Source of the DNA: Bugula neritina
Lineage: Eukaryota > Animalia > Bryozoa
Reading direction: 5' to 3'
Length of the DNA: 64,000 nucleotides
Assembly: GCA_964035545.1 (NCBI GenBank)
Contig: OZ037769.1
Coordinates: forward strand, 930,001 to 994,000
The notes under the pieces were generated by a model. That model did no database searches, was not told where the DNA came from, and was given only the letters and a program-made list of their open reading frames with translations. A program made the translations under genes and the position numbers. Shown here one piece after another: positions 254 to 39,715 of this stretch; positions within the stretch are counted from its first letter, which is position 1; the number at the start of each line of letters is the position of its first letter.

Positions 254-801
254 CTGTTGTAAGGAAATTCAAAGAAAATCCAATCATGTTGCTGAGAGTA
301 GAAACTGACAATACAGACTGTTCTTGAGTGAACTTCTGTATTATACCAGGTTCTGTAGTGCCAACACAGTATATTGTACCATTTATCTCTATCTCTGGAC
401 AGGGAGAGCTTCCTGCAGCTGTATCAATATATGGTATACTGATATAACTACCAGCAGGTGCTCTCAGAGTTAGACTACATAAAACAGGTGCTTCCTTTAT
501 CTCTCTATGTTCTATTATCCATGCATATCCTCTATCAACTGTCACTGTATTATTATCACATATATTCACTGGTTTAATATCTTGTCCTTCTATCAATATT
601 ATGATGTAACCACTCAGTAGCAGCAGGAGTTGTCTTCTGACTGACTGAAACAAGAACGTTTAATATTAGTGTATATACACTTCTAAATTTTGTACAGAAA
701 AACTGAATCAAATACTATAATGCATGGTTCCCTTTTGCACTGTTGATCCTGCTAACTGCGAGTAATATCAATATAATGTACATACACTGTGTACTTACCA
801 T
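254..801 (-). CDS. Receptor paralog R5, 5' part only: ATG micro-exon 799-801 and exon 2 at 254-644 (signal peptide plus CUB-like domain 1); continues past the window start
   Basis: ATG|GTAAGT at 801-793, acceptor TTTCAG before 644, giving M-SVRRQLLLLLSGYIIILIEG/QDIKP...; phase-1 donor at 253; homologous to exon 2 of the four complete copies. Confidence 0.85.
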
Positions 802-1983
802 TGTATTGAAGATACTCTGTAAGTAGATAGTTTATGTACAAGCTGTGATGTGTACACCTAGTGTAGTATCTTATACACAGTATAGACTTATATATTCCCA
901 ATAATACTAGTCAGGGAGTAAAGTATAGTCTATTATCACAAGTCAAATACTTCAGTATATATAATTGTGAAATATAGATATACATCTTTGTAGAAAGATA
1001 AATAATGTTATCACAATGAATGCTTTATCTTAAGGAATGTATTCATTTATAATAAATAATATGATATAAACCACTTGACTCGATAATCATTCATTTTACT
1101 TATGCAAATAGTTATCATAAAGTGCATTATCAAAGCCTGATATACTTCACACACAGTGTAGATATACTAGTAATGAATAACTACAATAAATTCTAATTAA
1201 CCACTCTAACAACATATATTGTATATATTACTATTGTTTCATGATTACATCCAGTATTCAGCTAGTCATGTGGACAGGAAGTAAACAAAGTACCCAGAAT
1301 GCACTGCAACAGAGCTACTGAGTAAGAGAAATCTCTGGGAGTTTCTATGTCTTTAAACATAATATGTTGTGTTACTAGAAGTTACTTCAGCTTGTTAACA
1401 ATGGATAATAAACAGCTAGATGTTTATTTAAGTATAACTCATAGTAGAGATGAGAGATTGTGTTGTTCACAAAGTATACAATACATGAATAATTATAATA
1501 AATATATTTATATTGAACAGTTGAATGACCAATACTAAAAATAAAATATATATATCAATGCAGAAACAGCTAGTGTATAAATTTATTGATAGCATTAATC
1601 TAATAATAAATAGTAAATGATATATATATATATATATAGAGCAGTAAGAGTTTCTGTAAAGTATGCTATCTATAATCATGTAACTTAGATATCACCTTAA
1701 ATAAAAAGAAGAAGCAGAAGACCCTTTAATGATTTCCAGCAATTTATAGCTTTAAATTACTTGCAGCTAGAAATAGCTAAGTGAGTGTTTTACAAATTAA
1801 AACAGCAAGTTGTAAAAATTTATTACATGCTGTTGAAAATTATACTCATAGCAATGCTAAGAAAAAAGACATTGCTTGCTAAAAATCAAACAAAACTGTG
1901 TTCAATTATTATAAAAAATTCTTGTTTAAAATTGTTGTGAATAAAACTGTCAACCATTACAAAACCTGAATATATTTTATATG

Positions 1984-4900
1984 CTAAATATTTTCATAAG
2001 CTGATGATTCTACTTGCAGCTTTTCATATGTTGATGCAGGAGCTCCGTTGTCTTGTAACTTTTCATAAAGAGAGCTCTCATTGTTTACAGGGTTGCCATT
2101 GGTTACTGAGGTTGGCGTGTCCATTTCCTCATAGTTATGAGTAGCTGAGTTCACTCTGGGAGAGAGTTGAGTAGACATGGGTTCCTCATACACATCAGGT
2201 ACAGAAGATGGGTGGGTTGTACAGGGCAAACTATCTCTTTTCAAGTAGAGTATTATAATACTGATTGTAATCACAGCTACAGGTACTGCTATGATCAGAG
2301 CAATGAGACCTCCTGGAAACGAAATGTTCGCGTGGTAAATAGAATTGAAATTTTTGAATATATATATTCAATCACTAAACCCGAAACTTAAGTTAATGTT
2401 AAGTCTACATAAACATGTAATTCTGGATAAACACATCACTTGCTATATTCTGCAGACAACCACAGATCTCTAATGAGAGAGTATATATAAAATATTCTGT
2501 AAACAGCCACTGAACTCTAGTGAGAGAGTATGTAATATATTCTGTAAACAGCCACAGAACTCTAATGACAGAGTATGTAATATATTCTGTAGACAGCCAC
2601 TAAACTCTAATGAGAGAGTATATATAATATATTCTGTAGACAGCCACTAAACTCTAATGAGAGAGTATATATAATATATTCTGTAGACAACCACTGAACT
2701 CTAATGAGAGAGTATATAATATATTCTGTAGACAGCCACTAAACTCTAGTGACAGAGTATGTAATATATTCTGTAGACAACCACAGAACTCTAATGACAG
2801 AGTATATAATATATTCTGTAGACAGCCACTGATCTCTAATGACAGAGTATATAATATATATAATATATAGACAGCCACTGAACTCTAGTGAGAGAGTATA
2901 TAATATATAATAGAAGAAGCATAAACTCACCACTTAGTGGCACATTCTCTTCATCTCTGGTAGTAGAATGAGTCATATGCTCAGATACAACACAACCAGG
3001 GTCATGTGACCAGTTACCAGGCTCTGTACAGACAGGATTTGTAGTCTTAGTATAACCATCATCACATGAGTAGAGTAGATTATCTCCTCTGTAATATCTG
3101 TCTAGTGTGATGGTACCATTAGCTAGGGTTAGTGCTGCTGGGTCACACTCAGCTGTTAGGAAATGACAAAGCCTGTTGAGGTAATTTTACATATGAAAAC
3201 GTAACAACTCAGCTGTTATAAAATGATCTATATTATATATATAGAAAACACAACGTAAGCTGAATCAGAATGATGAAAAGACAAATGAGAAATTCAGTTG
3301 AGATAATTTTACATATGAAAACATAATAACAAGCTACATTATAGGAATATTCTATTATATGCTGATAATTGAAAGTCACAAATAATTACCTGTTTGTGTA
3401 CATTCTGGAACACTGGACCAAGTTTTATCACGTTGACACTGAATCGCATCCATGTTTGTTTTCTTGTAACCATAGTAACAGTCATATGATAGAACTTCTT
3501 GGTAGACATATGTGAGAGTTGCCTCTCCTTTAGATGTGATATTGGTAGTGGAAACATTGATGGAGAGATCAGTGATGTCACACTCAACTGAAGTTATTAT
3601 TAAAAAGCAAACTTGCAGATGGCAATGAAATAATGTGCAAAAGTAATTTAAGTTGTCATCATTAGAATTAAGTATATTAAATTTAAAGTATGTAGTTTTG
3701 GCTATAAAGATAGTATGCAATATAATTATATACAATGTCTACACTTTACAGTATATTGTAACTATATACATATACCTGGTGTACATGTTAGAGATATACT
3801 ACTCCATATCCATGATATATTATTATTATATACATATACCTGGTATACATGTTAGAGATATATTACTCCATATCCATGGTATATTATCTGTATCAGTAGA
3901 ACTACATCTAGATACAACTTCTTCTATTCCATTTCTACTCTCATATCCTTTTATACACTCATATACTGTTGTATGAGTATCAGTCTTAGTTTTATTAGTA
4001 AACTCAACATCTCTTGGCTCTTCTGTACAGTAGGGGACTGGAAAAAACATTTAGAGGTATTATATTAAGTTAATAAAGACATTTTATATATAATATTTTT
4101 ATTACACTGCTTTATAATATTGTGAATACATTATACCTGGAATACATCTTATCTCTGATTGGTTGACCCACTTAGCCTCTGTACCATCTACTTTACATTC
4201 AGAAGTTGAATTATACTTCAACTGATGGTCAGTATCTTCACAAGAGTAGTTTATTATTGTACCAGGAAACCAGGGAGATTCAGTAGATGGAGTACTTGTC
4301 ACATCATCTATTTCAGGTTTATCTCCACATGTCAGTACTGTAAAAGTAAAGAGAAAGGTAGCTGGCATATGGCAGACACAGGGAGAAAGTCTAATACATT
4401 TCTGAAAATACTTTTAATTGTAGTTCTCATAATCTAATTGTGACAGTGAATGCATTATAATGTAATTATGTATTGATGCTTATAAACTGATTTATGTGTT
4501 TATATGTTTTTTAAAAAGAAAATTTCCTATTGGTTTGATCAGTCTAATGGTTATATTTATTGCTCTAATTCTGTGCACTGCTCACTCACCTGTAAACTGA
4601 ATCATAAAGAATACAGACTCTACATCTCCATTGACAGAATCTCCCTCATTTTCATATCTCACAGAGAGTTGGTTGTTTGTAGAGGTTATGTTATGTAGAT
4701 ATCCATCTGGGAAGTTAGCAAACTCCTGATTATCAATAAACCAGGAAGTTCTGGATGATTCTGTAAGCTCAGTAATATCAAAGCTAACATAGTGAGTTTC
4801 ACTTGGTAGGTTTGATATTGTAAACTCACAGGATGATAATGACTGTTTATTAGTTGTATAAGAGCTGGTGAATATTCCAGTCAACTGTTCAACTTGAGGT

Positions 4901-5714
4901 CTGTCTGGTATCTGAAGATTTTCACCACAGAATGTCACTGTAAAAGACATAGCAAAACTTTACTTCAATGTGTAACATATTTTAAAGATATTTGCTCTAC
5001 AGTGTTGAGTGAACCTTATTAAATGGGTTGCTTCTCAATAAACACTGTATAACTGATTACTAACAACACAATAACATATCACAACTACTCATTCATACAG
5101 GCAAGTTAATCATTCAAACTATTTGTTAGCTGCAATATAGATATTAGTTTTCTGAACTTTGAAAAGATTTACAAGTTTTTTACATTAGAATTACTTATAT
5201 AGATTCAAAGTGCATCCCTTTACCTGTTGTAAAGAATTCCAAGTTGAATCCTGTCGTGTTGCTGAGAGTAGAAACTAATAATACAGACTGTTCTTGAGTG
5301 AACTTCTGTATTATACCAGGTCTTGTAGAGTCAATACAGTATGTTGTACCATCTACCTGTATCTCTGGACAGATAGCACCTTCTTCAGAAGCTGCCTTAA
5401 CTCCTGGTATACTGAGATAACTACCAGCAGGTGCTCTCAGAGTTAGACTACATCTAACAGGTGCTCCCTCTATCTCTCTATGTTCTATTATCCCTGCATA
5501 TCCTCTATCAACTGTCACTGTATTATTATCACATATATTCACTGGTTTAATATCTTGTCCTTCTATTAACATGACTGTGTAGATACTCAGCAGTATGAGT
5601 TGCAGAGGGAAGAACTAAAATATAATTAAATTAAATAATGAAAACTGTAGATTGTAAGATTATGTAATAGATATTATCTCATGCATGTGTTTGTATAAAT
5701 ATTCTACTCACCAT
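1984..5714 (-). CDS. Receptor paralog R4: SP-CUB-like x2-sushi x4-TM-Tyr-motif tail (type A tail), 629 aa
   Basis: Exons 5712-5714, 5224-5614, 4590-4937, 4137-4337, 3840-4037, 3390-3587, 2931-3152, 1984-2312, all GT-AG, total 1890 nt in frame; sushi C..C..GY..C..W..C patterns; TM GLIALIIAVPVAVITISIIILYL-KR; tail YEEP, YEEM, YEKL, YEKL, YENI. Confidence 0.88.
2440..2905. repeat. ~42-44 bp minisatellite in the last intron of R4
   Basis: About 10-11 copies of CTCTAATGAGAGAGTATATAATATATTCTGTAGACAGCCACTGAA; only ~2 copies in the paralogous R2 intron (13610-13690). Confidence 0.9.
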
Positions 5715-7202
5715 TTTTTGGACTGATTTAACCTCAGTTTCAATTCAAATATGGTTTCTAAGAAGTTACATTTACTATACATGTATCTGTATTGTACAAG
5801 ACATGCACTGTGTGCTGCAGTTAGTCTGTAACTACACTTATCAACTCAGCTAATGAATAAAAAGAGTTTATATTTTAACTTCCTCCTAGTACGTATTGTA
5901 TTATTCACTCAGCACTCTATGAGCACATTGAATATGATCATTAGATAAGCAAACATGTATATCTATAGATAGTAACCAACTTCCCTATTATGTACACTAT
6001 GTTGAGTATTCTATACTATATAATGCACTAGTTATATGAGGTTATTTATTTTTCTTAGTTATTTGAACAAAGAATTATTACCATGTATTGCTGTACAATC
6101 ACATTGAAAACTGATTACCACATCTAGTATTTAACTTTATACTCACAATCTTGCTCACTGTTAGCAGTTCAGTTTCCTGTAAGAAAACTCTTATCAATTT
6201 TGTTTTTCTTGTTGGGTGCAAATACAAATTCCAAAATCACAGAAGAAATATTTTGCTTTCAAAACCAAAATATGCTTCAATATTACATCAGCATACATCT
6301 AATGGTAATTCATAAGTATTTGGAGAATAAAATAGTTGAAAAAACTGAACGATACACACACTGTTGTCAGTTATTGTACAGCTAATCGTATATGATGCCA
6401 GTTCATTTACTGCAAAAAATTATGGCAATGCTTATAATACAGGGGTTGAGATGCGTAGCTATGGAGTTAATGTAAGAGATTAATATTCTGTGATAGATTG
6501 TAGTTATTGTAATATATAATCATGAGTTGTATTATAGCATTGTAGCTATACAAGCTTTTAGAGAAAAAGCTATGAAAAGCTTTCAGCTAAATAACTATAA
6601 TGCTTGATGTATATAATGTTTCCACTCTCTCTGACATACTATCCAACTAATTAACATACACACATTATACATACATATATTTATCATAGTTCCGCAGCTA
6701 CTATTGCAGGGTATCAATTGATATAGAAATTGTTTTTATAAATTTGGAAAGATTAAATATGATGGTTTAAACAGACTTTATAACTAGGTATATAATGCAC
6801 AATTACTGCAGTATAAAAGAAAAGAATAATTTTTAAAAACTGTCACAGTGCAAAATACAACATAATAATAAATTTGTTATTAAATTTCAGAGTATGTGTG
6901 CAAAAAAAATAAAACAGTGGTCAGTAAATGGTTTGTTCTGGCAAGTGATAAAATTCTAATATTCAGTAATGTGAGTTTTAGTAGTGCAAAAGATAAATAA
7001 TTCAAACTGAAATATAACTTTACAAAACTGAGTTGTGAAGACCAATTCACATGGTATCAGCAATAATTGGTAAAAGTATTAGACACTCAATACAAACATG
7101 TGAAAGTTTTCAGTTACAAAAGACGGTAGAATCAGAAATCAAGTTTGCGTGAGCAAGCAATTACCGTATAATACTGTGTTTACTGTAATATATATAGTAT
7201 AG

Positions 7203-10200
7203 TCAAATGACTGGTGATGTCATTTCCTGTCTGTTCTCATAAAGAGGAAGTGTTGTGTTCAGTTGAAGTTGTTCATATGCTGATGATGGAGAGGTGGTGA
7301 GCTGCTCGTAAGTGTTGGTGGGAGGATTTGCTGAGTTTGAGGGTTGAGTAGACATAGGTTCTTCATATACTTCATGTTTATCAGATAGGGTGTTTCTACA
7401 GGGCAGACTACTTCTTTTCAAATAGAGAATAATACTTCCCAGTGTGATCACTGCTAGTACCAGAACTACCACCACTCCAATCAAACCATCTAAATAAAAT
7501 CCATATAATTCATAAAATCAAAAACAAAACAAAGAAATTTTTTATCTAGGCTTCCCTAGGTAAGTAGAGTGGGAAACCCTGTTAAAGCTCTAACGCATGA
7601 GACAATAAAGAATATTCCGCAAAAAGTTTCAACCACCAAGTGACTAAAATCGATTAACTCTGATTATCTAAATTCTGATGAAACCCTCCACCATTATTGT
7701 AAATAGGTAAGGCTTTTTTGGCTGCAGTTTGATATTCTTGATTTGCTCCAATCATCTGTCAGTTTGATCTCCAGACTCAGTTTAACTGAGTTAGTAGGTG
7801 ACACTTCCTAACCAGTTGTTTAAATTATTGAGTACTTTTTTTGCATATATATAACTGAATAATGCAGGTCTAATGACAGTTTAATAGTATTACTTACCCC
7901 TTTGAGATTTAGGGTATAGTTGACTGTTTCCTGTGACATCAGTAGATTCACCATTTTTCACCAACAAGCAACAAGGGTCATGTGACCAGTTACCAGACTT
8001 TGTACAGACAGTATCTGTAGTCTTAGTATAACCATCATTACATGAGTAAAGTAGATTATCTCCTCTGTAATATCTGCCTGTCTGTATGTCTCCATTAGTT
8101 AGAGTTACTAATAAAGGGCTACACTCAGCTGTAAGAATAACCACATACATTGTATACTCCTCAAAGCTGTGTTACCATACAACTACAGTTTGATGAATTT
8201 ATATTATAGAAATTAGTCTAAATAATCTTACCAGTCTCAGTACATTCTGGAACACTGGACCAACTACCATCATGCTGACATTGGATAACACTCGGATTTG
8301 TTTTCTTGTAACCATAGTAACAATAATACTGTAGAACTTCTTGGTAGAAATATATGTGAATTGTTCCCCCTTTAGATGTTACATAAGTAGTAGTTGTGTC
8401 GAGAAACCAATCACCAATGTCACATTTCACTGAATAAAAAACACAAAAGATTTCTTGCATTAAGCATTGAAACATTATTCTATATTCATGCATGGTATAT
8501 TATTAATTACGCTATAATATATAATATTACTATATACATATATAAATATATACCTGGTGTACATGTTAGAGATATATTACTCCATATCCATGGTATATTA
8601 TCTGTATCAGTAGAACTACATCTAGATGCAACTTCTTCTATTCCATATCTACTCTCATATCCTTTTATACACTCATATACTGTTGTATGAGTATCAGTCT
8701 TAGTTTTATTAGTAAACTCAACATTTCTTGGTTCTGCTGTGCAGTAGGGGACTAGAAAATACAATTATAAGTATTATATTCATATATTATTAGAGAAAGT
8801 CTATATATAATCCTCATTATACAGGTTTATGATGTTATGAAGACGTACCTGGAATACATCTGATCTCTGATTGGTTGACCCACTTAGCCTCTGTACCATC
8901 TACTTTACATTCAGAAGTTGAGTTATACTTCAACTGATAGTCAGTATCTTCACAAGAATAGTTTATTATTGTACCAGGAAACCAGGGAGATTCAATAGAT
9001 GGAGTACTTGTCACATGATCTATTTCAGGTTTATCTCCGCATGCTAGAACTGCCAAAGAAAACAAAAGTAAGCTCATATGTGGTAGAAACAGGGAGAAAG
9101 TCTAAGATATTTCTGAAAATAGTTTTAATTGTAGTTTCACAATCTAATTTTAGCAGTGAATGCATTATAATATAATATAATAATTATGTTATAAACTCTT
9201 ATATGTATAAATTTCTCACTCACCTGTAAACGTAATCATAAAGAATACTGAGTCTACATCTCCAAATAGAGGATCTGGTTCTTGTTCATATCTCACAGAG
9301 AGTTGGTTGTTTGTAGAGGTTATGTCATGTAGATATCCACCAGAGAAGTTAGCAAACTCCTGATTATCAATAAACCAAGAGATTCTGGATGATTCTGTAA
9401 ACTCTGTAATCATATCAAATCTAACATAGTGAGCTTCACTTGATAGGTTTGATATTGTAAACTCACAGAATGATAATGACTGTTTATTAGTTGTATAAGA
9501 GCTGGTGAATATTCCAGTCAACTGTTCAACTTGAGGTCTGTCTGGTATCTGAATATCTTCACCACAGGATGTTACTGTAAAACCACAGCAAATGGCATAT
9601 AATATTTTACACAATACAAATAATTGTTATATTTTTGTAGATCTCTTTTCACAGCAATATTTTAGTAGAAAGTGAATTAAGAAAAATCCAGTCTCACAAC
9701 TCAGCTGATCATAGTAAACTTAAGATGACATGTCGTAAACACTTACTAAAGTTTAGTGGGGTAACCTTATTTATAAACTAATATACATGGAACCTGCTAA
9801 CAACATATATCTTAACTACTTGTTTGCACAGGCAAGCTGCAAAATGCTATCTCAAGATTATCACTAACCTCAATGCAATTGGAATACTATACTCTAGCTA
9901 TTGGTGTTTGAAATTTCTCTAAGATGAAGAGATACATTCACATATACAGGATATATTATGAATTCAGTAATTTTTACGTGGTAGTTTACCTGTTGTATAC
10001 AAGAGTATTATAGATATTTACCTGTTGTAAAGAACTCTAAATTAAATCCTGCCATGTTGCTGAGAGTAGAAGCTGAAAATACAGACTGTTCTTGAGTGAA
10101 CTTCTGTATTATACCAGGTTCTGTAAAATCAATACAGTATGTTGTACCATCTATCTGTATCTCTGGACAGATAGCACCTTCTTCAGCTGCCTTAACTCCT

Positions 10201-10561
10201 GGTACACTGATATAACTACCAGCAGGTGCTCTCAGAGTTAGACTACATGTAACAGGTGCTCCCTTTATCTCTCTATGTTCTATTATCCCTGCATATCCTC
10301 TATCAACTGTCACTGTATTATTATCACATATATTCACTGGTTTAATATCTTGTCCTTTTATCAATATGATAATATAACCACTCAGTAGCAGTAGGAGTTG
10401 TCTTCTGACTGACTGAAACAAAAACAGCTAATATTAGTATATATATACTCCTAAATTTTGTACAGTAAAGCTCAACCAAACTCTATGCATGGTCCCCTTT
10501 ATGCACTGCTGATCCTGCCAACTAATATTATTATAATATACATACACTGTGTACTTACCAT
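7203..10561 (-). CDS. Receptor paralog R3 (type B tail), 619 aa
   Basis: Exons 10559-10561, 10022-10412, 9224-9574, 8849-9049, 8554-8751, 8232-8429, 7898-8128, 7203-7489 (1860 nt); TM GLIGVVVVLVLAVITLGSIILYL-KR; tail YEEP, YEQL-x7-YEQL, YENR. Confidence 0.88.
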
Positions 10562-10999
10562 TGTATTGAAGGTACTCTGTAAGTAGATAGTTTATGTACA
10601 TCTATAAGTGTTGTATCTTATACACAGTATAGACTTATATATTCCCAATAATACTAGTCAGGGAGAAAAGTATAGTCTATTATCACAAGTCAAATACTTC
10701 AGTATATATACTTGTGATTTATATTTATACTTCCTTGTAGAAAGATAAATAATGTTATCACAATGAATGCTTTATCACAATGAATGTATTCATTTAAAAT
10801 ATTATAATATAAACCATTTGACTCTAATCATTCATTCTACTTATGCAAGTAGTTATCATAAAATGCATTATTAAAGCCTTATATACTTCACACATATAGG
10901 TATACTAGTAATGAATAACTACAATAAATTCTAATTAACTTTTTTAACAACACATATAATATATATTACTACTGTTTTATGATTACATACAGTATTCAG

Positions 11000-12500
11000 A
11001 GGAAGTAAAGAAGCAACTAGAGAAAATGAAGAATGGTAAGGCGGCTGGACCCGATGAACTCCCGATGGAGATAGTGAAGAAGCTTGGAGACCTTGGCCTT
11101 GACTGGATTACAGCGGTACTAAGGGAGGTGCAGGATGCAGGTGAACCAGAAGAATGGAGGAGAAGCAAAATAACACCAATTTACAAACAGAAAGGGGACC
11201 CCTTGGACTGCGGTAATTACAGAGGGATCAAACTGTTGAGCCACTGTCTCAAGCTATGGGAGAGGGTAGTGGAGAATAGGATTAGAGGCTTGGTAAAAAT
11301 ATCGGACAGGCAATATGGATTCCAACCCGGAAAGTCAACAGTACAACCAATGTTCTGCCTCGGGATGTTACAGGAGAAGATGAGAGAATATCAAACAGAC
11401 CTCCACATGGTATTCGTTGATCTTGAAAAAGCGTACGACACAGTGCCACGAGACCTCATATGGTACTGTTTAAAAAAAAAAGTGTACCAGAGCAGTATGT
11501 AAGGATTATCCGGGATATGTACAAGAACTGCACTACATCAGTTACAACCAGCGAAGGAGCAACAGAAGAGATAGACATCGAAGTGGGGTTGCACCAGGGA
11601 TCTGCGTTGATTCCTTTCCTGTTCATAGTCATATTGGATGTAATCTCAGAAAAAATAGACGAGAAAACACCGTGGGCAATGCTCTTTGCAGATGACCTAG
11701 TTATCTGCGATAAAGAGGAAGAAAGGGTAGAAAAGAGATTAGAGGCATGGCGTGGACATCTAGAGGACGCAGGTCTCAAGGTGAGCCGGAAGAAAACAGC
11801 GCATCTTCCACCAAGGGAAAGCACCACCAGGATCAGAATGAAAAGATACGACCAGGAGGACTACACTGAGCTACCAACAACAAATAAGTTCAAGTATCTG
11901 GGGACAGTGATAGATCAGGATGGAGGCTGTGAGGCTGAAGTCACAAGAAGAATAAGTGCAGCGTGGGATAGATGGAGGGACCTATCAGGAGTTATGTGTG
12001 ACAAAAAAGTGCCTAAACAACTAAAGGTAGTACTCTACAAAACAATCATAAAACCAACACTGATATATGGCAATGAAACATGGCCCATCACCCAGAGGCA
12101 AGAGCAAAGGATAGAGGCAACCGAAATGCGAATGCTCAGACACATATATAGAATAAACTGGGAGGATCATGTTAGGAATGAAGACATAAGAAGCGAAGCT
12201 AAGGTTAAACCTGTGTCTAGGTATATGAGGAAGAGAAGACTTCAGTGGTATGGTCATGTGCAGAGGAGAGATAGTGAAGAGGATATTAAATATGTGGCTG
12301 AGTTGAAAATAGTGGGGAAGAGAAAGAGAGGACGACCCAAACAAAGATGGATGGACACGGTAGGAGATGACATGAAGCGATGGGATCTTAAACCGGAGGA
12401 GGCAGAAGACCGGGAAAGATGGCAGACGCTGATAGAGATTGGAAACCTGCAGACCGGTCACCCGTACAGGACTACGACCGTATAGGTGTGAAAGGTGTGA
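11000..12500 (+). mobile_element. 5'-truncated RTE-clade LINE (reverse transcriptase, one frameshift)
   Basis: ORFs 11026-11502 and 11460-12485 with GNYRGIKLL, QYGF, FVDLEKAYD, GLHQG, LFADD, FKYLG, RRLQWYGHV and RGRP; frameshift in the A-run at ~11472-11481; ATTCAG target duplication at 10994-10999 and 12501-12506; GGTGTGA(AA) repeat tail; empty site visible at ~1255-1275. Confidence 0.95.
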
Positions 12501-13214
12501 ATTCAGTTAGTAATTTGGACAGGAAGTAAACAAGGTACCCAGAATGCACTGCAACAGAACAACTGAGTAAGAGAAATCTCCGAGAGTTTCTAATATATTT
12601 AAACATACTATGTTGTGTTACTAGAAGTTACTTCAGCTTGTTAACAATGGATAATAAACAGCTAGATGTTTGTTTAAGTATAACTCATAGTATAGATGAG
12701 AGAGTATTATATTGTTTACAAAGTATATATTACATGAATAAGGGTAATAAATATAATATGTCTATATTAAACAGTTAGATGACCAATAATATAAATAGAA
12801 TATATATCAATGCAGGAACACTTAGTGTATAAATTTACTAATAACATTATAATATAATGGTAAATGATATATAGAGCAGTAAGAGTTTCTGTAAAGTATG
12901 CTATCTATCATGTAACTTAGACATCACCCTAAATGAAGAAGCAGAAGACCCTTTAATGATTTCCAGTAATTTATAGCTTTAAGTTACTTGCAGCTGTGAC
13001 CTAGAAATAGCTCAGGGAATGCTTTACAAATCAAAACAGCAAGTTGTAAAAATTTATTGCAGTTATAGAATTATACTCATAGAAATGCTAAGAGAAAAAA
13101 TATTGTTTGCTAAAGAGTAAACAAAATTGTGTTCAATTATAATTAAATATTTTTGTTTAAAATTGCTGTGAATAAAGATGTCAGGCACTATCTTGTCTGC
13201 ATGTATTTTACATG

Positions 13215-16200
13215 CTAAATATTTTCATAAGCTGATGATTCTACTTGCAGCTTTTCATATGTTGGTGCAGGAGCTCCGTTGTTTTGTAACTTTTCATAAA
13301 GAGAGCTCTCATTGTTTACAGAGTTGCCATTGGTTACTGAGGTAGACGTGTCCATTTCCTCATAGTTATGAGTAGCTGAGTTCACTCTCGAAGAGAGTTG
13401 GGTAGACATGGGTTCCTCGTACACATCAGGTACAAAAGGTGGGTGGGTTGTACAGGGCAAGCTATCTCTTTTCAAGTAGAGTATTATAATACTGATTGTA
13501 ATTACAGCTACAGGTACTGCTATGATCAGAGCAATGAGACCTCCTGGAAAGAAGTTAATGTTAAGTCTACGTAAACATGTGTAAATTCAACAGATTTATA
13601 TTCACAGTGGACAGCCACTGAACTCTGGTGAGAGAGTATGTAATATATTCTGTAGACAGCCACTATAAACTCTAATGAGAGAGTATATATAGATAAATTA
13701 AAAAAACAAGAACTCACCATTGAGTGGCACATTCTCTTCATATCTGGTAGTAGAATGAGTTATATTCTCAGATACAACACAACCAGGGTCATGTGACCAG
13801 TTACCAGACTCTGTGCAGACAGGATCTGTAGTCTTAGTATAACCATCATCACATGAATAGAGTAGATTATCTCCTCCAAAATATCTGTCTAGTGTGATGG
13901 TACCATTAGCTAGGGTTAGTGCTGCTGGGTCACACTCAGCTGTTAGAAAATATGTTATATATTTAGAAAAGACGACACAAGTTGAATCGGAATGATGAAA
14001 AGACAAATGACAAAGTCTGTTGAGGTTATTTACATATGACAACATAATAATAAGCTAAATTATAGAAATATTCTATTACATGCTAATTATTGAAAGTCAC
14101 AAACAATAACCTGTTAGTGTACATTCTGGAATACTGGACCAAGTTTTATCATGTTGACACTGAATCACATCCATGTTTGTTTTCTTGTAACCATAGTAAC
14201 AGTCATATGATAGAGCTTCTTGGTAGACATATGTGTGAGTTGTCCTTCCTTTAGATGTGATGTTAGTAGTGGAAACATTGATGGAGAGATCAATGATGTC
14301 ACACTCAACTAAAGTTATTAATAAAGGGTTATACTAGCAGATATCAATGAGCAGTTTATTCAAATTAAGAGAGGTTATACTTGTTACTATTATAATTTAG
14401 TATATTAAAATAAGATTATAGCAGCTATAAAGATAGCATGAATATAACAAGTATACAGCATTTACAGTATATTATTACTATGTCCTACATATACCTGGTG
14501 TACATGTTAGAGATATATTACTCCATATCCATGGTATATTATCTGTATCAGTAGAACTACATCTAGATACAACTTCTTCTATTCCATCTCTACTCTCATA
14601 TCCTTTTATACACTCGTATACTGTTGTATGAGTACCAGTCTTAGTTTTATTAGTAAACTCAACATCTCTCGGCTCTTCTGTACAGTAGGGAACTAGAAAA
14701 TGCGATTAGAAGTATGATTTTTAATTATTAGAAAAAGTTCATATATAATCTTTCATATATAGCGTTATGTGTTGGAGACATACCTGGAATACATCTGATC
14801 TCTGATTGGTTGATCCACTTAGCCTCTGTACCATCTACTTTACATTCAGAAGTTGAGTTATATTTCAACTGATAGTCAGTATCTTCACAAGAATAGTTTA
14901 TTATTGTACCAGGAAACCAGGGAGATTCAGTAGATGGAGTACTTGTCAAATGATCTATTTCAGGTTTATCTCCACATGTCAGTACTGTAAAAGTAAAGAG
15001 AAAGGTAGCTGGCATATGGCAGACACAGGGAGAAAGTCTAAGACATTTCTGAAAAAACTTTTAATTGCAGTTTTCATAATCTAATTTTGGCAGTGAACGA
15101 ATTATAACGTAAGTATGTATTGATGCTTATAAACTCATTTACGTGTTCATATGTTTTTTAAAAAGAAAATTTCCTGTTGTTTTGATCAGTCTAATGATTA
15201 TATTTAATGATCTAATTTTGTGCATCTCTCACTCACCGGTAAACTGAATCATAAAGAATACTTCATCTACATCTCCAGATACAGGATCTCCCTCATTTTC
15301 ATATCTCACAGAGAGTTGGTTGTTTGTAGAGGTTATGTCATGTAGATATTCATTAGGGAAGTTAGCAAACTCCTGATTATCAATAAACCAGGAGGTTCTG
15401 GATGATTCTCTAATCTCAGTAATAATATCAAACGTAACATAGTGAGCTTCACTTGGTAGGTTTGATATTGTAAACTCACAGGATGATAATGAATATTTAA
15501 TAGTTGTATAAGAGCTGGTGAATATTCCAGTCAACTGTTCAACTTGAGGTCTGTCTGGTATCTGAATATCTTCATCACAAGATATTACTGTAATGATAAT
15601 CAACAGAGTAAAACAAATTATTTTGCAAATTTCAATTATTTAATTGTACCGAATTTTTATAGATTTTGTTGATTAATTTATCACCTATAGTTTTATAATG
15701 AATAGGCTGAAATTGAAACCAATAATAACGTTTCAAGTTAATTTCTTCACACCGTTGGGAACTTTTAAGCCATCCATTAGACTGTGCAGTGCAGCAGCTA
15801 ACAATAGCATGCAATGAATGTTAGCTACAATTAGTATAAGTTTTATAGTAGCGGTAAAGTCAAAGCCACCTGAAAATTTTATTTTCAGCCGATCAGAAAT
15901 CCCAAATCATTTCAGTACATACTTGCACAAAATTCTTTATAAAACAAAATTGTATAGGCATTCAACCTTAAAACATTATGTAGATGAAAACTAATATATA
16001 TAAGAAAATTTTAGTACTGCATAAGTGAAGTGTGCCAGGAATTCTTTAAAAAATAAATAATAAATAGGCCAATATATAGACCAATCTATTTTTATTTGTA
16101 AAGTGCTAAATCTTCACTCAAAATAAATAGTGTAGTAGTTTTGTGGGTAGAATGAAATTTAGTGGGGAGCCTAACTTCAGTATAGAAGAAACAAGGTGAA

Positions 16201-17128
16201 GTGGTAATCTTGAATGAAATAATCTTTATTGCAGTAAAAGTAGTGTATAAAATTAGGTCTGTACCCTGCGAGCTCCATGCAGTGATAGACAATGCTAAAA
16301 ATTGGGCTTTCCGGCAGAGGTTGGCCTACATAATTCAAACAATTACCACAAAGAAACTATTCCCTATGCTAAAAGCTTTATCAATAACTACAATATTTAT
16401 AAGGCATTAGAAAGCTACCCATAGCTTAGCTATAATTGGAGGCATTCCAAAGTTACGCCAAGAGCTTAGTTATAATTACAGCATTCAAAAAGATAAGCAA
16501 TAAGTAATTATAATGCTGAAGCACATAGTTACTAAAACTTTCCAAAACATAGTAGTGACAACTCTCAAAATCCATTACAATAGTTTACAGTTGAAACTTT
16601 TTAATAGACGAGAGTAATACATGGTTACCTGTTGTAAAGAACTCCAGGTTAAATCCAGACATGTTGCTGAGAGTAGAAACTGATAATACAGACTGTTCTT
16701 GAATGAACTTCTGTATTATACCAGGTCTTGTAGAGTCAATACAGTATATTAATGTACCATCTATCTGTATCTCTATCTGTATCTCTGGACAGATAGCACC
16801 TTCAGGAGCTGCATAAACTCCTTGTATACTAATATAACTACCAGCAGGTGCTCTCAGAGTTAGACTACATCTAACAGGTGCTCCCTCTATCTCTCTATGT
16901 TCTATTATCCCTGCATATCCTCCATCAACTGTCACTGTATTATTATCGCATATATTCACTGGTTTAATATCTTGTCCTTTTATCAATATGACTGTGTAGA
17001 TACTCAGTAGTAGGAGTTGCAGAGGGAAGAACTAAAATAATTATATTAAATAATAAAAACTGTAGATTGTAAGATTATATATTTATAGATACTATCTCAT
17101 GTGTTTGTATATAAGTTTTACTCACCAT
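13215..17128 (-). CDS. Receptor paralog R2 (type A tail), 634 aa
   Basis: Exons 17126-17128, 16629-17031, 15237-15587, 14784-14984, 14495-14692, 14111-14308, 13718-13939, 13215-13543 (1905 nt, open frame). Confidence 0.88.
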
Positions 17129-18622
17129 TCTTAGACTGATTTAATCCCAATTTCAATTCAAATATGGTTTCTAAGAAGTTACATTTACCCTACATGTATC
17201 TGTATATTGTACAAGACGTGCACTGTGTGCTGCAGCTAGTCTGTAACTAAACTATCAACTTAGCTAATGATTAGAAGGAGTTTATATTTTAACTTCCTCA
17301 TAGTACCTATAATGTGTTATTTACTCAGCACCCTATGAGCACATTGAATATGATCATTAGATAAGCAAACATGTATATCTATAGATAATAACCAACTTCC
17401 CTATTATATACACTATGTTGAGTATTCTATACTATATAATGCACTAGTTATATGAGGTTATCTATTTTCCTTAGTCATTTGAACAAAGAACTATTACCAT
17501 GTATTGCTGTACAATCACAGTGAAAACTGATTACCACATCTAGTATCTATCGTTATACTCACAATCTTGCTCACTGTTAGCAGTTCAGTTTCCTGCAAGA
17601 AACTTCTCTTATCAATTTTGTTTTTCTTGTTGGGTGCAAATACAGATTTCAAAATCACAGAAGAAATATTTTGCTTTCAGAACCAAATGCTTCAATAGTA
17701 TATCAACATACATTTAATGCTAATTCATACGTATTTTGAAAATACAATACTTGAGAAAACTGAACAATACACACACTGTTGTCAGTTATTGTACAGCTGA
17801 TCATATGATACCAGTTCATTTTCTGCGAAGAATAAAGGCAATGCTTATAATGCAGGTGTTGAAATGTGTAGCTATGCATGAAGTTAATGTAAGATATTAA
17901 TACTCTGTTATAGATTGTAGTTAAATTGTAATATAATCATGTGTTGTATCATAGCATTGTAGCTATACAAGCTTTTAGAGAAAAAGCTATGAAAAGCTTT
18001 CAGCTAAATAACTAATGCTTGATGTATATAATGTTTCCACTCTCTCTGACATACTACCTACTAGTTAACATACACATATTATGTATATATTTATTATAGT
18101 TCGGCAGCTACTATTGCAGAGTATCAATTGATATAGAAATTGTTTTTATAAATTTGTTATGATAAATGATGATGGTTTAAACAGACTTTATAATTAGGTA
18201 TATAATGCACAATTACTGAAGTATAAAAGAAAAGAATAATTTTTAAAAACTTATATCCACTATTACAGTTCGAAATACAATTACATACTAATAAATTTGT
18301 TATTAAATTTCAGAGTATGTGTGCAAAAAATAAAAAAGCAGTCAATAAAATTGTTTGTTGTGGCAAATGATAAAATTCTAATATTCAGTTATGTGAGTTT
18401 CAGTAATGTAAAAACATAAATAATTCACACTGAAAGATAACTTTACAAAACTGAGTTGTGAAGACCGATTCACATAGTATCAGAAAATTGGTAAAGGTAT
18501 TAGACACTGAATACAAACGTGTAAAAGTTTTCAGTTGAAAAAAGCAGTAAAATCAGAAATAAAGTGTGCATGAGCAAGCAATTATATTACTGCATGTGTT
18601 TACTGTAATGTGTGTAGTATAG

Positions 18623-21486
18623 TCAAATGACTGGTGATGTCATTTCCTGTCTGTTCTCATAAAGAGGAAGTGTTGTGTTCAGTTGAAGTTGTTCATATGC
18701 TGATGATGGAGAGGTGGTGAGCTGCTCGTAAGTGTTGGTGGGAGGATTTGCTGAGTTTGAGGGTCGAGTAGACATAGGTTCTTCATATACTTCATGTTTA
18801 TCAGATGGGGTGTCTCTACAGGGCAGACAACTTCTTTTCAAGTAGAGAATAATACTACCCAGTGTAACCACTGCTAGTACCAGAACTACCACCACTCCAA
18901 TCAAACCATCTAAAACATGTCATGTGATTTGTAAAGCAGAATGTAATATAAAAGAAAGAGCAAATGATTGACAATAAGTAGAGTGGATAAACCTATAAAA
19001 TCCGTGAAACATAAGACAATAGAAAATATTCTACAAAAATAGTTGAACAAAATATACTCAAATTGATTGGCTCTAACTATCTAAATTCTGGTAAATCCCT
19101 CCACTATTATTCTAAATATCAACATAAGGCTGATCAGCTGAAAGTTAAATGTCTTGATTTGACCCAAACAGCTGTCAGCTTCAACTCAGTTAGTAACTGA
19201 CAATGTCTATAAACTGTTTCCATCTATATACAACTTTAAACAGCATCACTTACCTCTTTGTGACTGGAGGGCTAGATAGCTGTTTCTGGTGGCTTCAGTA
19301 GATTTACCATCTTTGACCAACAGACAACCAGGGTCATGTGACCAGTTACCAGACTCTGTACAGACAGGATCTGTAGTCTTAGTATAACCAATATCACATG
19401 AGTAGAGTAGATTATCTCCTCCGTAATATCTGCCTGTCTGTATGTCTCCGTTAGTTAGATTTAGTGCTGTAGGGTCACACTCATCTGTAAGAATAACCAC
19501 ATATATGTATTGTATACTTTTCAAAGCTGTGTTACCATACAACTACAGTTTGATAAATGTATATTATAGACATGAGTCTAAATAATCTTACCAGTCTCAG
19601 TACATTCTGGAACACTGGACCAACTACCATCATACTGACATTGAATAACACTCGGATTTGTTTTCTTGTAACCATAGTAACAATAATACTGTAGAACTTC
19701 TTGGTAGAAATATGTGTGAGTTATTCCTCCTTTAGACGTCACATAAGTAGTTGTTGTGTCGAGAAACAAATCACTAATGTCACATTCCACTGAATAAAAA
19801 ACACAAGAGATTTCTTGTAACATTGAAACATTATCCTATATTCATGGTATATTATTACGCTATACTATATATTATTACTATAACATATATAAATATATAC
19901 CTATTGTACATGTTATAAGAGATAGTATATTATTACTATATACAAGTACCTGGTGTACATGTTAGAAATATATTACTCCATATCCATGGTATATTATCTG
20001 TATCAGTAGAATTACATCTAGATACAACTTCTTCTACTCCATCTCTACTCTCATATCCTTTTATACACTCATATACTGTTGTATGAGTATCAGTCTTGGT
20101 TTTATTAGTAAACTCAACATCTCTTGGCTCTTCTGTACAGTAGGGGACTAGAAAATACAACTAGAAAAATTCTATTCAGGTATTAGATGACGTCTATATA
20201 ATATGGCACTTATAATGCAAGCTTGTGCTATAAATATATACCTGGAATACATCTGATCTCTGATTGCTTGACCCACTTAGCCTCTGTATCATCTACTTTA
20301 CATTCAGAAGTTGAGTTATATTTCAACTGATAGTCAGTATCTTCACAAGAATAGTTTATTATTGTTCCAGGAAACCAGGGAGATTCAGTAGATGGAGTAC
20401 TTGTCACATGATCTATTTCAGGTTTATCTCCACATGTCAGAACTGTAACAAGAGTGACTACATTGTTCAAACCTATACTATTTAAAATATAATGTTAACC
20501 ATTGTGTCGAAATTGAATTATTTACTCACCTGTAAACTGAATCATAAAGAATACTGAATCTACATCATCAGATACAGGATCTGGCTCATTTTCATATTTC
20601 ACAGAGAGTTGGTTGTTTGTAGAGGTTATGTTATGTAGATATCCATCAGGGAAGTTAGCAAACTCCTGATTATCAATAAACCAGGAGGTTCTGGATGATT
20701 CTGTTATAAGCTCAGTAATATCAAACCTAACATAGTGAGCTTCACTTGGTAGGTTTGATATTGTAAACTCACATGATGGTAATGACTGTTTATTAGTTGT
20801 ATAAGAGCTGGTGAATATTCCAGTCAACTGTTCAACTTGAGGTCTGTCTGGTATCTGAATATCTTCACCACAGGATGTCACTGTAACATAAATGTATACA
20901 ATAATTACATGTCGTCTATAGCACAAAAGTTAGGCTTGTTACATAGGTTATCTTTAGCTTCACCTGTTTTATATAAGAATAACATTTATACCTGTTGTAA
21001 AGAATTCCAAGTTGAACCATGTCACATTGCTGAGAGTAGAAACTGATAATACAGACTGTTCTTGAGTGAGCTCCTGTATAATACCTTCAGGTCTTGTAGA
21101 GTCAATACAGTATGTTGTACTATCTATATGTACTTCCGCGCAAAAGTATCCTTCAAAATATTTATAATGAACTCCTGGTATACTGATATAACTACCAGCA
21201 GGTGCTCTCAGAGTTAGACTACATAAAACAGGTGCTCCCTTTATCTCTCTATGTTCTATTATCCCTGCATATCCTCTATCAACTGTCACTGTATTATTAT
21301 CACATATATTCACTGGTTTAATATCTTGTCCTTCTATGAATATGACTGTGTATATACTCAGCAGTATGAGTTGCAGAGGGAAGAACTGAAATATAATTAA
21401 ATTAAATTAAATAATGAAAACTGTAGATTGCAAATTTATATACTAGATACTATCTCATGTGTGTGTAAATAAGTTTTACTCACCAT
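18623..21486 (-). CDS. Receptor paralog R1 (type B tail), 620 aa; first gene of the array
   Basis: Exons 21484-21486, 20992-21385, 20530-20880, 20242-20442, 19950-20147, 19592-19789, 19254-19484, 18623-18909 (1863 nt, open frame). Confidence 0.88.

Positions 21487-22402: not shown

Positions 22403-39715
<17,313 letters not shown>

Follow-up and report, generated by a model that had tools for sequence, protein, structure and literature searches.

A tandem family of putative CUB-like and sushi receptor genes in Bugula neritina with rapid amino-acid change at a few codons of one distal-domain loop

Receptor genes in the window

The window analyzed here is a 64,000-nucleotide stretch of Bugula neritina DNA (GenBank assembly GCA_964035545.1, contig OZ037769.1, positions 930,001 to 994,000; the contig is called C5 below) that is AT-rich (~32% G+C) and contains a ~5-kb unit present five times. 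The unit carries a predicted membrane receptor gene, and at a few codons of one loop in the membrane-distal domain of these receptors, amino-acid changes outpace synonymous and non-coding ones several-fold. The five motif-bearing exon-2 copies that encode this domain, R1 to R5, all lie on the minus strand, at coordinates that agree with those of a preliminary description made from the sequence. A six-frame search of the whole 216-Mb genome found 22 exon-2 copies, none with an internal stop and all on C5; 19 of these are close to one another (55-100% identity) and have the same exon layout, and three are distant members.

Exon 1 is predicted to be the ATG alone, followed by GTGAGT or GTAAGT (R1 21484-21486, with GTGAGT; R2 17126-17128; R3 10559-10561; R4 5712-5714; R5 799-801; all minus strand). 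Exon 2 is bounded by predicted splice sites, a pyrimidine tract and AG ahead and ACAACAG/gt at its end; in R1 (g951) it occupies 20992..21385, with the acceptor ..tatttcag, and codes for 19 signal-peptide codons (type A, FFPLQL..) and a 113-aa first CUB-like domain. Within it lie a block of near-identical DNA covering mature protein codons 1 to 44-45 (21197..21328), which we call the N-block and which recurs in 19 of 19 close paralogues, and the hypervariable loop PGVHYKYFEGYFCA (21137..21178, alignment columns 52-66). Six further open frames follow in each gene, for a ~118-residue Cys-containing domain, four sushi-like exons and a membrane-span and tail exon. In R1 these are the core of exon 3, a second CUB-like domain (20525..20878, TSCGEDIQ..FTGE); exons 4 (20231..20494) and 5 (19939..20160), which show the C..C..C..W..C pattern of sushi (complement control protein, CCP; PF00084) domains and have no Pfam match; exons 6 (19581..19835, 34.3 bits) and 7 (19249..19542, 26.0 bits), which pass the Pfam Sushi cut-off of 20.7 bits; and exon 8 (18626..18919), with the membrane span and a tail of type X (YEEP, YEQL-x7-YEQL, YENR), all on the minus strand.

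The other exon-2 copies are those of R2 (g947, 16629..17031), with loop QGVYAAPEGAICP at 16786-16824 followed by a 12-nt tandem duplication; R3 (g940, 10022..10412), with a signal peptide of type B (SVRRQLLLLL..) and loop PGVKAAEEGAICP at 10164-10202; R4 (g935, 5224..5614), with loop PGVKAASEEGAICP at 5366-5407; and R5 (g930, 254..644), with loop PYIDTAAGSSPCP at 396-434, of which only exons 1 and 2 fall inside the window, the remainder preceding its start. A second tail, type Y (YEEM, YEKL, YEKL-x6-YENI), is found in R2 (13218-13586) and R4 (1987-2367). The predicted gene order is thus an ATG exon, signal peptide with CUB-like domain 1, CUB-like domain 2, four sushi/CCP domains, and a membrane span with a tyrosine-motif tail, one domain per exon; every search and fold prediction reported here was run exon by exon rather than on the joined spliced protein.

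Fold of the distal domain and position of the variable loop

An AlphaFold2 model of exon 2, built from the 22-copy alignment, is all-beta (predicted local distance difference test, pLDDT, 87), with strands at residues 5-7, 12-15, 21-26, 35-41, 47-55, 65-68, 71-75, 82-86, 93-99 and 105-111. The top Foldseek matches to this model are mostly CUB domains, and the top 42 entries from VIA-align are all CUB domains (Z 6.5-9.6, root-mean-square deviation 2.7-3.7, 84-102 of 113 residues aligned), including TMPRSS6, spermadhesins, MASP, C1r/C1s, neuropilin, PCPE-1, Kremen and ADAMTS13. The exon-3 model (pLDDT 74.5) gives a similar list, its top matches being almost all CUB at Z 6-7.9. Pfam CUB (PF00431) has no match at E <= 1 to exon 2 or exon 3, and a profile of the 22 exon-2 copies searched against PDB sequences returned nothing at E <= 10. 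The preliminary description had spoken of a predicted CUB fold, which is borne out at the level of fold and not at that of sequence family. As modelled, exons 2 and 3 are CUB-like in fold; the Z values are middling and homology is not proven.

In the order of strands, the hypervariable segment (residues 56-64) forms the loop after strand 5, immediately before the third cysteine. Of the other variable spots, PV[x]C stands at the end of the loop that follows strand 3, IDSTRP lies in the loop after strand 7 and SN[xx] in the loop after strand 9, so that by topology all four would be odd-numbered loops clustered at one end of the jelly roll. The cysteines at 9, 36, 63 and 74 show little or no variation (g677 lacks Cys3 and Cys4), with a spacing of 27 between Cys1 and Cys2, and by analogy with described CUB structures Cys63-Cys74 would be the conserved disulfide joining L5 to L7 (PMC8051872). 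Where CUB domains bind Ca2+, the metal is held by two of the odd-numbered loops, L5 and L9, which also make up the ligand site (PMC8051872); the short N-terminal strands of the exon-2 model (5-7, 12-15) resemble the spermadhesin type, which does not bind Ca2+. On the model, then, the hypervariable segment corresponds to CUB loop L5, which lies at the usual ligand-binding end of CUB domains.

The SN[x][x] spot in L9 (279-293, 5249-5263, 10047-10061, 16654-16668 and 21017-21031 in the five copies) also toggles an N-x-T/S sequon: 12 of 17 close genes have it, and g940, g930, g925, g915 and g714 do not. Such a switch would add or remove a predicted glycan beside the variable loop.

Probable selection on loop L5 and alternative explanations

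The flanking strings QDIKPVNICDNNTVTVD and CSLTLRAPAGSY occur in the five exon-2 copies as first quoted, and so do the five loop strings ahead of Cys3 (PGVHYKYFEGYFC, QGVYAAPEGAIC, PGVKAAEEGAIC, PGVKAASEEGAIC and PYIDTAAGSSPC), whose in-frame indels are real, and the further variable spots PV[L/R/T]C, IDSTRP/IDFTEP/VGTTEP and SN[xx]. The 12-nt duplication reported for R2 is a perfect GAGATACAGATA x2 and is also found in paralogues g706 and g915. Across the 19 close copies, nucleotide diversity is 0.02-0.05 over nt 0-150 of the mature exon, climbs abruptly to 0.30 over nt 150-180 and reaches 0.35-0.55 in the flanking introns. The pattern of loop variation is seen again in the 19 close paralogues and in 17 further exon-2 open reading frames from public Bugula neritina-lineage data, and because of this repetition it is not a chance observation.

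Pairwise Nei-Gojobori (NG86) estimates over 17 close genes give dN 0.53 and dS 0.21 for loop codons 51-60, and omega (dN/dS) 0.29 for the last 32 codons of exon 2. Codon site models, the check that the preliminary description had proposed, were fitted with our own Goldman-Yang likelihood code, which matches the IQ-TREE M0 likelihood exactly (-1866.97). For codons 46-120, M2a was preferred over M1a with 19 genes (likelihood-ratio test statistic, LRT, 34.0, p 4e-8; omega 5.0 in 8.7% of sites) and with 17 genes (LRT 41.5, p 1e-9; omega 5.5 in 8.9% of sites), as it was for the whole of exon 2 (LRT 40.8, p 1.4e-9; omega 5.2 in 5.6% of sites). With 17 genes and fixed branch proportions, M8 was preferred over M7 for codons 46-120 (LRT 32.2, p 1e-7; omega 9.2 in 2.8% of sites). 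All sites with a posterior above 0.9 for omega > 1 fall in the loop, at columns 55, 56, 58 and 59 in both runs on codons 46-120 and at 55, 56, 59, 62 and 64 in the run on whole exon 2. At a handful of loop codons, dN/dS thus exceeds 1. The rest of the half-exon gives a nonsynonymous to synonymous rate ratio (beta/alpha) of 0.38, significantly below 1 (p 2.5e-10).

A number of points weigh against diversifying selection, some of them general and others bearing on one or other of the alternatives considered below. The codon code is home-made and validated only on M0, and its posteriors are naive empirical Bayes rather than Bayes empirical Bayes values. The variable residues were placed on the fold by strand order and the CUB literature. 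When the whole loop is treated as one partition, its beta/alpha is 1.5-1.8 and does not exceed 1 significantly (p 0.09-0.27), and most of its positions may simply be unconstrained. The site models assume one tree, and heavy recombination in this receptor family inflates likelihood-ratio tests; the loop contains indels, with columns 59 and 63 poorly aligned; and exon 3, too, gives a significant M1a/M2a test (LRT 34.6), with flagged sites that are mostly two-state flip-flops.

The alternative that survives best, to which we give a small if real chance, is relaxed constraint alone, in which L5 would be a floppy surface loop without a role, drifting neutrally and tolerating indels within an otherwise constrained domain. 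The single-partition result is what it would lead one to expect, and the other variable spots (column 35 in PV[x]C, IDSTRP in L7, SN[xx] in L9), which the preliminary description had grouped with the loop, fit beta = alpha and are compatible with neutrality; moreover, odd-numbered loops are the most divergent between CUB structures and vary widely among CUB domains generally (PMC8051872). Neutral drift accounts poorly, however, for column 55, which holds 11 different residues in 19 genes and for which a single-site test with a site-specific synonymous rate gives alpha 0, beta 9.3 and p about 1e-8 (p 0.03 for column 56), and M8a, with omega fixed at 1, was rejected against M8 (codons 46-120, 17 genes, fixed branch proportions; LRT 28.4, p about 5e-8; omega 9.2 in 2.8% of sites). 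It is also at odds with a comparison of three syntenic orthologue pairs between this and the public Bugula assembly (g702/BnA, g706/BnB and g615/Bn037). In these, the loop has pN 0.291 and pS 0.091 (pN/pS 3.2, Fisher p 0.02), and its pN exceeds the non-coding divergence between the two assemblies of about 0.12-0.13 (Poisson p 2e-4); pN/pS in the rest of the half-exon is 0.65. A further point against relaxation is the conservation of the loop in g697, a divergent family member, where it matches the loop of the B. neritina counterpart exactly. That syntenic genes differ in their loops between the two assemblies fits allelic polymorphism and species divergence alike.

An analytical artefact, in which gene conversion among paralogues and misalignment of the indel-rich loop would produce false-positive site models, seems to us rather improbable. 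In its favor, signal-peptide type, exon 2 and tail type have been reshuffled among the genes, gaps occur at columns 59, 63 and 67-70, and the sites flagged in exon 3 look like recombination homoplasy, a result that limits the trust to be placed in such tests for this family. Column 55, however, directly follows an ungapped, conserved PGV and needs at least 10 nonsynonymous changes on any tree. Two further comparisons are independent of the paralogue tree, namely that of the orthologue pairs and a tree-free count of minimum states in the loop, which gives 55 nonsynonymous against 6 synonymous (binomial p 0.004; Fisher p against the rest 0.005) and is biased upward at very variable codons. Imported paralogous tracts would have raised loop pS, which at 0.091 is about that of the flank (0.088), and the signal remains after the distant genes are dropped (the run with 17 genes). 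A local mutational hotspot, with slippage or targeted hypermutation of the loop DNA and no selection, is very improbable: the 12-nt tandem duplication and several 3-nt indels do lie in or beside the loop, but hypermutation is disfavored because the synonymous rate there is normal (alpha 1.0-1.1 times the regional mean; dS 0.21-0.28 against 0.23 in the C-terminal part), and the duplication, being common to three genes, is old.

Relaxation is the main rival and recombination artefact the second, each weakened by the single-site, tree-free and orthologue tests. Diversifying selection, as first suggested for the loop, holds for a few L5 codons (M1a/M2a, M7/M8, M8a/M8, column 55 and the orthologues) and not for the loop as one partition. 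Nor is variation confined to the distal domain, as had been supposed: exon 3 is overall about as variable as exon 2, besides its significant site-model test, and both sushi 3 and sushi 4 do vary. The near-invariance of sushi 1 and sushi 2, on the other hand, was confirmed, with dN 0.030 in exon 4 and 0.047 in exon 5.

Homogenization of the surrounding framework

The loop had been described as lying in an almost invariant scaffold. Near-identity of the flanking sequence is real, but a conserved protein framework is not a sufficient reading of it, as codons 1-45 are invariant at synonymous sites too. In this N-block, dS is 0.03-0.05 (0.047 among the close genes), against about 0.2 elsewhere in close paralogues and more than 1 in distant ones, and omega is about 0.8. 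Even against g683 and g677, N-block dS is 0.05-0.14, although dS over their remaining codons in exon 2 runs from 0.5 to past saturation and is above 1 for the C-terminal half. Because the block is invariant at synonymous sites even in comparison with paralogues whose other half is saturated, its near-identity points to short-tract gene conversion (concerted evolution) rather than to constraint on the fold alone. Exon 4 (dS 0.11), exon 5 (dS 0.059) and the middle of exon 7 are homogenized in the same way, and in paralogues that cannot otherwise be aligned with a B. neritina contig, blocks of 170-290 bp at 92-97% identity to it coincide with the homogenized exons.

Between the two assemblies the N-block has 4 synonymous differences over 95.8 sites, against 12.5 expected from non-coding divergence (Poisson p 0.006); the synonymous rate in the remainder of the exon would predict 8.4, from which the observed 4 is not significantly different. 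Some nucleotide-level constraint on the block beyond gene conversion is no more than hinted at by these counts. RNA structure was considered as a cause of the synonymous conservation and rejected, the fold z-score being an unremarkable +0.6.

Family arrangement and relatives

The 22 copies form three tandem arrays on C5, which is chromosome-scale, at 591-615 kb, 677-714 kb and 898-952 kb. Along the main array (898-952 kb; 1987-21486 in the window) signal peptide type A pairs with tail Y and type B with tail X, and the two kinds of gene mostly alternate. R1, a hybrid, combines signal peptide A with tail X, and its loop HYKYFEGYF is shared with g900, 51 kb distant. Genes g920 (C5:917278-920868) and g905 (C5:902018-905882) are without the sushi-3 exon. 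The third array has a third type of signal peptide, and no recognizable membrane or tail exon was found within 7 kb for its three genes (C5:588000-615339) or for g702 (C5:702278-704422); these genes may encode secreted proteins or another kind of tail.

Named relatives found with HMMER among 1.84 billion proteins are bryozoan only: KAF6039009.1 and EB796_018054 from B. neritina, and XP_067929890.1 and XP_067930168.1 from Watersipora subatra. The sole non-bryozoan named match, a fish phosphatase, was taken as spurious. A tunicate origin, with Ciona vCRL1 and Botryllus fester in mind, was considered at first and abandoned because the named relatives are bryozoan. In public records the B. neritina proteins carry the label hypothetical or "Sushi domain-containing". 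Literature searches found no description of the receptor family; as to Alr1, the paper on the B. neritina genome notes weak similarities and nothing more (PMC7576161). The arrays are collinear with the public B. neritina assembly, yet DNA identity to it is only 76-88%, and for this reason the window appears to represent a closely related Bugula lineage and not the haplotype of the public assembly.

A 220-bp SINE-like (short interspersed element) repeat, found in the public assembly at contig L037:2470-2710, has more than 4800 first-look candidates in the genome of the window. Its copies are 92-98% identical between the two assemblies, compared with 76-88% for unique DNA.

A candidate recognition repertoire

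Bryozoans are colonial, show kin and colony recognition and have a well-known bacterial symbiosis, and we know of no recognition receptor for the phylum. The reading that we favor, and hold to be probable, is that these genes form a germline repertoire of recognition receptors in which L5 is a specificity loop under diversifying selection, set in a framework homogenized by conversion. The 19 close genes (22 with the distant ones) would encode type-I membrane receptors, with specificity set by L5 of CUB-like domain 1, pinned by the putative Cys3-Cys4 disulfide. Short-tract gene conversion would homogenize the framework and selection would halt it at the loop, while neighboring genes would exchange modules (signal peptide, exon 2 and tail). 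Tandem paralogues with omega > 1 at sites of a distal domain are what is seen in diversifying multigene families of recognition receptors, subject here to the recombination caveat given above.

L5 would bind the ligand, for which microbes, symbionts and conspecifics are all candidates, and binding would be relayed inward by motifs resembling immunoreceptor tyrosine-based activation or inhibition motifs (ITAM/ITIM). By pattern the tails fit YxxL/I-x6-8-YxxL/I and/or (S/I/V/L)xYxx(I/V/L), with YEQL-TTSPSSA-YEQL and SAYEQL in tail X and YEKL-QVESSA-YENI, SLYEKL and SAYENI in tail Y. Signaling through these tyrosines would be part of this reading, as would any role in immunity or colony recognition.

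A bolder extension, in which we place little confidence, would make the arrays the specificity locus of bryozoan self/non-self or symbiont/pathogen recognition. L5 would then act in the manner of a complementarity-determining region, the tails of neighboring genes would be opposed signaling partners, and the 135-nt N-block just ahead of the loop would be a homology anchor by which loops are moved through conversion; such an anchor would explain the lowered synonymous divergence of the block, even between two Bugula lineages.

As a concrete candidate for bryozoan recognition, the family offers a named loop and about 35 naturally occurring variants of it. If the favored reading of L5 as a specificity loop is true, the CUB fold joins a short list of variable recognition scaffolds in animals (Ig, LRR, lectin, fibrinogen). 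The exon also provides a clean, small case in which gene conversion and diversifying selection meet at a sharp boundary within a single exon.

Comparison with known systems

In C1r, C1s and the MASPs (CUB2-CCP1-CCP2), as in the predicted Bugula receptors, a CUB jelly roll is directly followed by sushi/CCP domains, and MASP-1/2 CUB2, C1r and C1s are among the best structural matches to Bugula exon 2 (Z 7-8). The loops that form the ligand site in Ca2+-binding CUB domains, L5 and L9 (PMC8051872), are loops that vary in the Bugula receptors. The two groups differ in that no sequence similarity is detectable by Pfam CUB or by the PDB profile search (E <= 10), and in that the Bugula receptors are without a protease or EGF domain, have a predicted membrane anchor and tyrosine-motif tail, and have a longer L5 (9-12 residues).

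The CSMD1-3/SEZ6 family resembles them in consisting of type-I membrane proteins of CUB and sushi domains. CSMD1-3/SEZ6 are built as long arrays of alternating CUB and sushi domains, and the proteins are conserved, with neuronal or complement-regulatory roles; the Bugula receptors, in contrast, have two CUB-like domains followed by four sushi domains and form a fast-evolving tandem family. MHC, KIR/LILR and Ly49 genes are tandem arrays that combine a homogenized framework with selected contact residues, and their activating and inhibitory tails are swapped between genes. They differ from the Bugula receptors in having unrelated folds and in belonging to a different phylum.

Hydractinia Alr1/Alr2 are likewise clustered paralogues of a colonial invertebrate, with one exon per domain and variable membrane-distal domains, and their tails carry overlapping ITAM/ITIM-like motifs that differ between neighbors (bioRxiv 10.1101/2022.03.25.485889). 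Their ectodomains, however, are Ig-like and their allelic variation is linked to fusion and rejection, whereas variation in Bugula is seen between paralogues and lineages only. Botryllus fester and uncle fester and Ciona vCRL1 are described as variable, sushi-containing membrane receptors implicated in self/non-self recognition (PMC3549757, PMC5465252). They are not known to carry a CUB head, and their variation is allelic or arises by splicing. The logic of tandem receptors with a variable distal domain, gene conversion and swapped tails is thus familiar from MHC/KIR and Alr, and the unusual part is the CUB-like variable head.

Other sequence features of the window

Upstream of R1, at 22406-24624 on the minus strand, lie more open frames without a Pfam match (for example 24337-24624 and 22406-22582), which may belong to another gene. 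Farther upstream of the receptor array is a long tandem array of a 22-nt unit (25007-25798, spacing 22 or 17 nt). R4 has a minisatellite in its last intron (2408-2933), which translates to repeated SLEFSGCLQNIL. In several genes, short partial duplicates of the 3' end of exon 5 (~60 nt, 21 codons) stand right after that exon (3765-3824 in the window; C5:609411-609537 and C5:908775-908837), and could be alternative donor segments or products of slippage. The spacer between R3 and R2 is longer than the others (6.6 kb against 4.4-5 kb) and contains, at about 10900-12500, an insert that is strongly skewed and richer in G+C, has long open frames of low complexity and is probably a mobile-element insertion.

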